A DNA stretch of 64,000 nucleotides from Basidiobolus meristosporus CBS 931.73. Taxonomy: Eukaryota; Fungi; Basidiobolomycota. This document shows positions 4,976 through 6,835 of the stretch, one piece after another. The stretch's first letter is position 1. The number at the start of each line of letters is the position of its first letter. The position numbers and the translations under genes are program-made. The notes under the pieces were generated by a model. It had not been told where the DNA came from and ran no database searches. It was given only the letters and a program-made list of their open reading frames with translations. The stretch is taken from contig MCFE01000159.1 in the NCBI GenBank assembly GCA_002104905.1, positions 85,593-149,592 of the forward strand. The letters run 5' to 3'.

Positions 4976-6835
4976 TCATTGTTTGGGCAAATAGAACCCG
5001 CCAGGAAATATCTCTTGTTCTTTTTCGGGTTGTTGCTGCTGTTGGTAATTTTCAGGCGTAGGGATCGACGATAGCCCAACAAATCCCCCAGGCGGGTAAT
5101 TTGCTCGATAAGATTGCGGCCCTGATGGTGGATTCGAGATTTCTCGTGAACCCGACTGGAATCCTTGAGAGCCATTATACCCACCGCCAGCCTCATAGTT
5201 CGAGCCGTTGTGAGTTGCTTGGTAACTAGAATTTCCTTGCTCTGATGGTCGATAATTGCCTTGACCTTGTGGTTTGCCATAATTACCCTGACTTTGAGGT
5301 TGATTGTAGCTCCCTTGACCTTGCGATTGGTCATAACTACTCTGGCCTTGTGGTTGGTTATAACTCCCTTGGCCTTGCATTTGGCCGTAGTTGCTTTGGC
5401 CCTGGGGCTGATTGTAGCCTCCTTGACTTGACGTCTGGGCGTAGTTATCTTGACCTTGCGGTTGGTTATAACTCCCTTGGCTTTGCGGTTGGCTGTAGTT
5501 GCTTTGGCCTTGAGGTTGATTATAGCCCCCTTGACCTTGCGACTGACCATAGTTACCTTGACCTTGTGGCTGATTATAGTTCCCTTGGCCGTAGTTACCC
5601 TGCCCTTGTGGTTGGTTATTGTTTCCTAGAGTTTGATTGCTGTGACTATCATGACTTTGCTGTTGGCTGTAATTTCCTTGATTTGGTGGTTGATTGAAGC
5701 TATTCTGACCAGACGATTGATTATAGCTGCTCTGCGGTTGATTGTAGGTGCTTTGGCTAAGCGGTTGATTGTAGTTTGATTGATTATAGTTGCCTTGGTT
5801 TGAAGATGATCCATAGTTGCCCTGACTAGAAACACTGCTGTAGTTGTCTCCTTGAATTTGCGATTGGCCGTAGCTTTGGCTACCCATACTTGGGGAGTAA
5901 CCGGAGTTGCTATTAGATTGGCCTTGTGAGGAATTTGCATAGTCTCCAGATGATCCTCCAGCAGATTGATTATTGCTGATGGTACTGGCACTACCGACAG
6001 CCCCAGCACCCAACACGCCGCCAAGTAGAGTGCCAAGATTGCCAAGTTTTCCTAGTTCGATCTTAGAAGCAAACTTCTGGACAAAGCCTAGAACCAGGTT
6101 TTGGTCAGGCACTTTGTTTTCTAGCTCTCGCTGAATGTTTTGTAGGATTGATTTCTCAAATGTAGGCATGATGTTTCCTACTACCTGCTGCACTACTTCG
6201 CGCACACGATCGAGAATTCTTCGAAATTTGTCGTCAAAAATTCCCCTGGTCGCTTCTCCACTCCCACCAGGCGTTAGAAGTTGTTGTACGGCCTCTGGCA
6301 TGTGTGAAACCAACTTGTTGTAGATTTCGAGCCCACTTTCATGAACTTTTGGTTCTATTTTCTCCATAGCTCTACTGATAGCTGCTTGTCGTCCCTGCGT
6401 AATGAAATCAAGATTAACCCCACGACTCCCCTCTTCGCCTTTCTTTTTCTGATGGGCCAGGAGGCTGCTAACTTTACTCGTTACACATTCCTTGCTTTCT
6501 CTCACGATGGCTTGAGTAAGGAAGTCGACGGTACCGGTACTAGCCCTGTCTACCTGTTCTCTGGAGATCGTACGAAGCTTCTCTTGAATGTTTTCTAGGA
6601 CATTTCCAAATTTATTTTGGACCTTGTTCATAATGGCATCTACCAAGTTCCGGTCAAGAGATCGCTCGCCTGTCCCTCCATTGCTGAAAATTTCTTGTAT
6701 AGCAGGAGGTAATCTCTGTACCAAGACGGCTTTTGTCTCATCGACATTTCGCTCGACATGCTCACGAATAGCTGGCTCGAGTTTATCAACAAATCCACCA
6801 AGTAAATTGGTGGCAGCATCCATAGGATTAGGCAT
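4976..6835 (-). CDS. Unknown protein: N-terminal helical domain plus C-terminal Q/N/G/S/Y-rich prion-like domain
   Basis: Single long ORF, likely start MPNPMD at 6835. The first ~280 aa look amphipathic-helical; the C-terminal half is almost only Q, N, G, S, Y and P. Confidence 0.85.
   Translation of the reverse strand: MPNPMDAATNLLGGFVDKLEPAIREHVERNVDETKAVLVQRLPPAIQEIFSNGGTGERSLDRNLVDAIMNKVQNKFGNVLENIQEKLRTISREQVDRASTGTVDFLTQAIVRESKECVTSKVSSLLAHQKKKGEEGSRGVNLDFITQGRQAAISRAMEKIEPKVHESGLEIYNKLVSHMPEAVQQLLTPGGSGEATRGIFDDKFRRILDRVREVVQQVVGNIMPTFEKSILQNIQRELENKVPDQNLVLGFVQKFASKIELGKLGNLGTLLGGVLGAGAVGSASTISNNQSAGGSSGDYANSSQGQSNSNSGYSPSMGSQSYGQSQIQGDNYSSVSSQGNYGSSSNQGNYNQSNYNQPLSQSTYNQPQSSYNQSSGQNSFNQPPNQGNYSQQQSHDSHSNQTLGNNNQPQGQGNYGQGNYNQPQGQGNYGQSQGQGGYNQPQGQSNYSQPQSQGSYNQPQGQDNYAQTSSQGGYNQPQGQSNYGQMQGQGSYNQPQGQSSYDQSQGQGSYNQPQSQGNYGKPQGQGNYRPSEQGNSSYQATHNGSNYEAGGGYNGSQGFQSGSREISNPPSGPQSYRANYPPGGFVGLSSIPTPENYQQQQQPEKEQEIFPGGFYLPKQ
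5249..5614 (-). repeat. Coding tandem repeat, 27-bp unit (9 aa, Q-x-Q-G-Q-G/S-N/S/G-Y-x) with a 54-bp higher-order period
   Basis: 13 nonamers plus one partial, e.g. QPQGQGNYG QSQGQGGYN QPQGQSNYS QPQSQGSYN QPQGQDNYA QTSSQGGYN. Confidence 0.95.

Follow-up and report, generated by a model that had tools for sequence, protein, structure and literature searches.

The DNA analysed here (hereafter the window) is a stretch of 64,000 nt from the early-diverging fungus Basidiobolus meristosporus CBS 931.73 (contig MCFE01000159.1, positions 85,593 to 149,592). At positions 4976-6835 of its reverse strand, on which all features of the gene described below are located, it carries a coding sequence for a protein of 619 amino acids (aa). 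The predicted protein consists of a helical N-terminal domain (N-domain, residues 1-260), a Gly-rich hydrophobic segment (residues 261-284), and a tail of 327 aa (residues 293-619) that contains a strictly periodic array of nonapeptides rich in Gln and Asn (Q/N). The tail may serve as a self-association module.

The gene and its orthologue in Basidiobolus ranarum

According to the list of open reading frames (ORFs) and their translations, the coding sequence is complete and consists of a single exon, and its frame of 619 codons is uninterrupted up to the stop codon at 4976-4978. Translation may alternatively start at Met5, which would match the start of the B. ranarum gene model. A word-index search with the N-domain as query returned, besides the protein itself, a single match, a hypothetical protein of 538 aa from Basidiobolus ranarum (P0002, locus L082) with 84% identity in the N-domain. 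This only close relative agrees with the original prediction, made from the sequence alone, that the DNA derives from an early-diverging fungus, and it provides an orthologue of the kind that this prediction had proposed to look for. The two proteins are collinear, sharing the N-domain, the Gly-rich segment, a Q/N/S/Y/P tail, and the motif at the end. The B. ranarum locus also contains an orthologue of the gene directly upstream in the window (7236-8486, same strand; 52% identity, E = 5e-124). Because the upstream neighbor is orthologous as well, the two Basidiobolus genes are regarded as positional orthologues.

Synonymous sites between the two genes are saturated (proportion of synonymous differences, pS, of about 0.8). 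At this distance, the proportion of nonsynonymous differences (pN) was 0.088 for the N-domain, 0.31 for the whole tail, 0.25 for the nonapeptide array, and 0.19 for the C-terminal 34 residues. Low pN values at saturated pS imply that the gene is real and constrained throughout, with the strongest constraint on the N-domain. Judged by the intact frame, the positional orthologue, and these codon comparisons, ORF 4976-6835 is a real, conserved Basidiobolus gene.

Composition, periodicity, and constraint of the tail

The original prediction described a C-terminal region of about 300 aa made almost only of Q, N, G, S, Y, and P. The tail comprises 327 aa, and these six residues account for about 85% of it (Q 22%, S 17%, G 17%, N 13%, Y 9%, and P 8%). 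Q/N together make up 34% and Tyr 9.5%, in addition to 5.5% charged residues (D/E/K/R) and 5.2% I/L/V/M/F/W. The composition of residues 313-619 is nearly identical (Q 22%, S 16%, G 16%, and Y 10%).

Within the tail, the nonapeptide array extends over residues 411-536 (5228-5605) and comprises 12-13 units in phase, as established by Tandem Repeats Finder (TRF), a listing of the register, a shuffle test, and the translation. Units of the form YNQPQGQxN alternate with units of the form YxQxQGQGx, which gives rise to a superperiod of 18 aa. The Tyr residues at 420, 429 ... 528 define 12 consecutive spacings of exactly 9 residues; such a run occurred in none of 20,000 shuffled tails, for which the longest run was 4. 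In the DNA, TRF placed the array at 5259-5590; a period of 27 nt gave 12.2 copies with 65% matches, and the matches rose to 72% at 54 nt and to 78% at 108 nt, which confirms that two unit types alternate with an 18-aa period. Both the count given in the original prediction (12 in-phase repeats of 9 aa plus one more, alternating with an 18-aa period) and its description of them as Sup35-like nonapeptides were thus borne out by the exact Tyr spacing, the shuffle test, and the TRF periods; Sup35-type domains are defined here by in-phase tandem P/Q/G/Y/N repeats of 8-9 residues.

To assess how the units have been maintained, six 18-aa units of the array were compared pairwise. Between units, pS reached 0.87 and pN only 0.14 (ratio 0.16), and the codons for Y, Q, N, G, S, and P were thoroughly mixed. 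The array is therefore old, and neither recent slippage nor an assembly artefact accounts for it. On this codon evidence, the peptide units are preserved by purifying selection. We consider the difference between pS and pN among the units the strongest evidence in the sequence for a role of the tail that depends on its exact peptide. It also disfavors a spacer defined by composition only, since such a spacer need not keep its units.

The array has a counterpart in B. ranarum, where the tail shows 11 consecutive Tyr spacings of 9 residues. The orthologue thus shares the period of the repeats, while its unit sequence differs (units like QPPSQ[GS]NYN). Tail length is likewise variable (327 aa here vs 250 aa in B. 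ranarum), as is the remaining tail sequence; the period of 9, the positions of Tyr and Gln, and the C-terminal end persist across this divergence. That end (residues 586-619; 4979-5080), delimited by translation and by alignment with the orthologue, reads IPTPE[ND]YQQ ... FPGGFYLPKQ. B. ranarum has the same last 10 residues, FPGGFYLPKQ, and a conserved IPTPE[ND]YQQ stretch, which makes this end a candidate docking motif.

The other parts of the tail are less regular. A proximal S/G/N/Q/Y low-complexity region (residues 285-410; 5606-5983), recognized by its Tyr positions and composition, displays looser Tyr spacing (5-26 residues, mostly 9-10) and aligns poorly with the orthologue, with indels. 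Between the array and the C-terminal end lies a distal G/S/N/Y/P region (residues 537-585; 5081-5227), delimited by translation and the alignment with the orthologue.

With regard to prion-likeness, the Q/N content peaks at 38 of 80 residues (at residue 345; 35 of 80 in the orthologue), which places the tail in the classical Q/N-rich prion-like class (at least 30 Q/N per 80-residue window), with few charged and few aliphatic residues. None of the other ORFs in the window reaches even 24 Q/N per 80 residues. A PAPA-like score from an approximate re-implementation was 0.126 here and 0.007 for the B. ranarum orthologue (usual cut-off 0.05). On this approximate scale, the B. meristosporus protein exceeds the cut-off but its orthologue does not. 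The ESM-Atlas model of the whole protein has no confident fold (predicted local distance difference test score, pLDDT, of 0.49).

Three further long ORFs overlap the repeat (4939-5550 and 5626-6045 on the reverse strand, 5245-5697 on the forward strand); they were rejected as genes and are considered by-products of periodic DNA poor in stop codons. The upstream gene at 7236-8486 (reverse strand) encodes a P/G/R/Y-rich protein of 416 aa without a Pfam match. Its N-terminus starts like a signal peptide (MKCTFILVAASFTLVSC), and a core around PVHPPNFNNAPIVIPIPQRSGIP is nearly identical in B. ranarum; judged from these features, the product represents an uncharacterized secreted family. The downstream ORF 3916-4458 (reverse strand) is S/N/P-rich in its N-terminal part and ends in ...FFTGSAGQS, which may be the start of a Walker A motif of a PIF1-type helicase, cut by an intron.

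The N-domain, its family, and the Gly-rich segment

Residues 1-260 (6056-6835) constitute the helical N-domain, as delimited by a hidden Markov model (HMM) search, AlphaFold2 (AF2) modeling, and pN relative to the orthologue. The domain contains internal helical repeats: one copy spans residues 16-93 (6557-6790) and includes the LP motif L42-P43, and a second copy spans residues 157-237 (6125-6367). The two halves of the domain matched each other in BLASTP (E = 7e-9, 28% identity over 85 aa), and hhalign of the family profile against itself gave a probability (Prob) of 93%. Across the family, L42-P43 and T107 show little or no variation.

Neither the protein nor its N-domain nor any of 20 family members had a Pfam match above threshold. 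RRM, RGG, zinc-finger, and enzyme families were absent from the Pfam matches of the protein, in agreement with the original prediction, in which no RNA-binding or enzymatic domain had been recognized. Searches against PDB sequences, with the single sequence as well as with the profile, returned chance-level matches only (among them apolipoprotein A-I, annexin, and haemagglutinin; E at least 0.016). When 1.84 billion representatives were searched exhaustively with an HMM, 16 proteins were retrieved at E <= 1e-3, about 13 of which were judged to be family members. Three matches (P0008-P0010) were rejected: they align with the profile in short stretches only and appear to be repeat or coiled-coil proteins unrelated to the family. 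Further members were added by a profile word search, resulting in an alignment of 20 sequences. All members are unnamed hypothetical proteins, and every one with a recorded source comes from an early-diverging fungus. These sources include B. meristosporus, Entomophthora muscae, Neoconidiobolus thromboides, and Podila humilis, as well as Ambispora, Entrophospora, Dentiscutata, Acaulospora, Diversispora, Gigaspora, Scutellospora, and Racocetra of the Glomeromycotina. B. meristosporus CBS 931.73 itself encodes a paralogue-like relative of 349 aa (P0003).

Based on the 20-sequence alignment, AF2 predicted an all-helical N-domain (pLDDT 72.6, predicted TM-score 0.64); the model obtained with 2 sequences was unusable (pLDDT 40). 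Fold searches of the PDB with the AF2 model (Foldseek and VIA-align, wide) found generic long-helix bundles only, with a best Z of 9.3, which is below the noise level for helical proteins. A language-model search of the Atlas returned two unnamed Ascomycota clusters below 0.9 and no named cluster. The N-domain was thus mapped to a well-known family neither by AF2/Foldseek nor by profile searches.

The Pfam family most often matched below threshold by family members was DUF445 (PF04286), which comprises bacterial membrane-anchored proteins of the YjiN/YheB type. The window protein scored 11.3 bits (E = 0.31), and 8 of the 20 family members scored 11-19 bits (best 19.1 bits, E = 0.0013), at a gathering threshold of 33.8 bits. 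In the ESM-Atlas fold search, a Myxococcota cluster of DUF2486/DUF445/GvpQ-like proteins stood out with a TM-score of 0.64 over 252 residues (root mean square deviation 4.6; following rows <= 0.38), a value that compares two predicted models of helical repeats. BLASTP against YjiN gave E = 0.24, and hhalign gave a Prob of 0.4-1.5% against two DUF445 profiles, one shallow (10 sequences, from E. coli yjiN) and one diverse (32 sequences, from 80 GTDB loci), both covering the YjiN-type subfamily only. Homology to DUF445 is accordingly not established, with all scores below the gathering threshold, hhalign at about 1%, and a BLASTP E of 0.24, and the likeness is suggestive only. The fungal proteins resemble DUF445 in having an all-helical repeat domain of similar size, but they are eukaryotic and lack terminal transmembrane (TM) anchors. 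A useful literature on DUF445 function was not found. We therefore regard the N-domain as an undescribed helical-repeat family of Zoopagomycota and Mucoromycota; a DUF445-like fold is possible but unproven.

Low-complexity regions recur in this family at other positions. In the members from E. muscae (P0023, about residues 216-325) and N. thromboides (P0014, about residues 225-310), a Tyr-periodic Q/N region with YNxPQG is inserted in the loop of the second internal repeat instead of being attached at the C-terminus; the insert of P0023 is built from units of about 22 aa containing YNxPQGF. These inserts look like an independent gain of a similar module. Judged from the sequences compared, Tyr-periodic Q/N modules are recurrent, positionally independent additions among zoopagomycote members. 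Five Glomeromycotina members (P0006, P0024, P0025, P0004, and P0013) have acidic loops (DKDGDGKND, KHSDDGDG) at sites where Basidiobolus has PGGSGE/NGGTGE; these presumably resemble DxDxDG calcium-binding loops.

The Gly-rich hydrophobic stretch noted in the original prediction lies at residues 261-284 (5984-6055 by translation; LGKLGNLGTLLGGVLGAGAVGSAS), shows GxxxGxxxG spacing, and is nearly identical in B. ranarum. A TM helix at this position was rejected owing to low hydrophobicity: the Kyte-Doolittle mean over 19 residues is 1.28, below the usual 1.6, and the lowest 19-residue insertion free energy (dG) is +4.6 kcal/mol on an approximate translocon scale, on which a genuine TM helix of YjiN from E. 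coli has -3.4. No signal peptide or TM helix was predicted, and family members start with a charged, helical N-terminus. At their end, many members have a short amphipathic or hydrophobic segment followed by basic residues, a weak hint at peripheral membrane or lipid binding in the family.

Possible roles of the tail

We favor, with about even confidence, the reading that the tail is a self-association module based on Tyr "stickers", carried by a soluble or peripheral helical protein and equipped with a C-terminal docking motif. It is favored because the composition is prion-like, the repeat is kept at the peptide level, no other Pfam domain explains the tail, and Tyr-periodic Q/N regions recur in the family. 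A long C-terminal low-complexity module would have been gained in the Basidiobolus lineage on a cytosolic or peripheral all-helical repeat protein. The tail would be intrinsically disordered, with the Tyr residues at every ninth position as stickers and with Q/G/S/N/P spacers containing QxQxQ runs. Acting in the prion-like manner of FUS and Sup35, such a multivalent module for self-association could gather the helical domain in a condensate, gel, or labile cross-beta assembly. Localization, possibly on a membrane or lipid surface, would come from the helical domain together with the Gly-rich segment, and the invariant FPGGFYLPKQ end would dock a partner.

Several observations weigh against the tail being such a module. 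A generic sticker-spacer tail would not require every second unit to keep YNQPQGQ almost invariant, a strictness that may reflect an ordered fold of the repeats or a binding site present in many copies. Members of the Glomeromycotina are about 300 aa long and lack a Q/N region, and the P. humilis member (P0015) carries a different low-complexity tail (about residues 280-493), in which four to five Gly/Ala-rich amphipathic units (AAILGAxMSKVxG) alternate with D/E runs at the site of the Gly-rich segment and Q/N tail of Basidiobolus. The Q/N module, missing in the former and different in the latter, is thus dispensable for the core function of the family. Furthermore, Pro content is higher in the orthologue (12% vs 8% here), and its approximate prion propensity is lower.

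Alternatively, the tail could be a passive spacer, an entropic linker that arose by genome-wide Q/N/S/Y accretion and presents the C-terminal motif away from the helical domain. We consider this rather unlikely: the C-terminal end is indeed the best-conserved part of the tail (last 10 residues identical, pN 0.19), tail length and sequence differ between the species, and other family members do without the module, but the exact Tyr phase and the QxQxQ units are kept despite saturated synonymous sites, and genome-wide accretion is at odds with the low Q/N content of the other ORFs in the window. The units could also belong to an ordered structural repeat, in which two 9-mers form an 18-residue rung of a beta-roll, beta-solenoid-like, or beta-spiral fiber. 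QxQxQ would then form the strands and G-x-Y-x the turns, and the product might be an elastic or fibrous material like resilin or glutenin, possibly cross-linked through Tyr. Such a fold would fit the near-invariant alternate units, the 18-aa superperiod (partly present in B. ranarum), selection on the exact peptide and not on composition alone, and the rung geometry of RTX beta-rolls. Nevertheless, we regard it, including the material role, as distinctly unlikely, given that neither the whole protein in the Atlas nor the array (three-copy prediction of residues 402-540, pLDDT < 50) has a confident fold, that block duplication explains the 54- and 108-nt periods equally well, that an extracellular material would need a signal peptide, which is not predicted, and that the units are devoid of Asp for Ca2+ ligands of the RTX type.

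A bona fide prion or functional amyloid, as put forward in the original prediction, would require that the array self-templates and thereby activates or inactivates the helical domain in a heritable or switch-like manner. The Q/N-rich composition, the PAPA-like score above the cut-off, and the purifying selection on the repeat are in line with this proposal, as is the number of Sup35-type 9-mers (12-13 vs 5.5 in Sup35). In Sup35, with 5.5 copies of PQGGYQQYN, deletion of a single repeat blocks efficient [PSI+] formation, and repeat expansion raises the frequency of conversion to [PSI+] (PMC2276218). Still, prion propensity is not conserved in the Pro-rich orthologue, and no HeLo domain or other known prion-partner domain was found. 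The low-complexity module is also positionally unstable in the family. Moreover, most Q/N-rich domains that pass composition screens form no prions, as known from yeast screens, and we hold this proposal to be improbable. We give still less credence to a combination of order and templating, by which the array would form a cross-beta solenoid that templates itself, places two 9-mers in each 18-residue rung with ladders of Gln and Tyr, and acts as a prion-like switch on a soluble helical domain. If true, early-diverging (zoopagomycote) fungi would thereby have their first prion or functional amyloid, with Sup35-type repeats invented independently and selected throughout Basidiobolus divergence. 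Least probable, and in our view very nearly dismissible, is a membrane-anchored protein in which the Gly-rich segment forms a TM helix as in bacterial DUF445, with the tail extracellular or lumenal. Sub-threshold DUF445 matches do reach into this segment, a non-significant BLASTP match pairs its GTLLGGVLG with GTLVGGxIG, where the C-terminal TM helix of YjiN begins, and the best fold match was the DUF2486/DUF445 cluster. Against such an anchor stand the dG and Kyte-Doolittle values of the segment, its being shorter or absent in other family members, and the failure of the profile-profile tests with YjiN-type DUF445.

Under the self-association reading as under its alternatives, the long and unusually regular Sup35-like array on an undescribed family offers a clean natural substrate to ask what such arrays are selected for, be it the spacing of stickers, an ordered fold of the repeats, or the propagation of a prion. 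The new helical-repeat family, for its part, carries lineage-specific low-complexity or Ca-loop-like elaborations. To our knowledge, nearly all prion-like and FUS-like low-complexity domains described so far come from Dikarya, animals, or Dictyostelium, and no literature linking Basidiobolus with prion-like proteins was found. Folded domains that bear a prion-like low-complexity region with oligopeptide repeats are, as such, known. The protein family, without a Pfam match and with all members unnamed, is undescribed, and the lineage is unusual for candidates of this type.

Among known systems, RTX beta-rolls build an 18-residue rung from two 9-mers, and the analogy is limited to this geometry, as the array has no GGxGxDxUx and no conserved Ca2+-binding Asp. 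Like the protein described here, HET-s/HeLo proteins have a globular helical N-domain followed by C-terminal repeats for which amyloid formation is proposed. However, no HeLo, HeLo-like, or SesA domain was found by Pfam scans (protein at E <= 1, family members at E <= 10), and the pair of 21-residue pseudo-repeats is missing; moreover, HET-s has a prion domain that is not Q/N-rich. The tail shares with the FET family (FUS/EWS/TAF15) a composition dominated by S/Y/G/Q and regularly spaced Tyr; in FET SYGQ domains, such Tyr residues are plausible stickers for phase separation or for labile cross-beta polymers. It differs from FET proteins by the lack of RRM, RGG, and zinc finger, by an Asn content of 12-13%, by a far more exact periodicity, and by Tyr residues that are mostly flanked by N/G/S and do not form strict [G/S]Y[G/S] triplets. 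The prion domain of Sup35 has in common with the tail the 9-residue period, the P/Q/G/Y/N alphabet, the Q/N-rich and charge-poor context, and the modular attachment to a folded domain. In contrast to Sup35, with its 5.5 units of two Tyr each, the tail has 12-13 units, a single Tyr in each, and an 18-aa superperiod. It is C-terminal, not N-terminal as in Sup35, and its partner is unrelated to eRF3: the protein has no GTPase or eRF3 match in Pfam, and the N-domain family differs from eRF3/Sup35. The two arrays thus resemble each other without homology.

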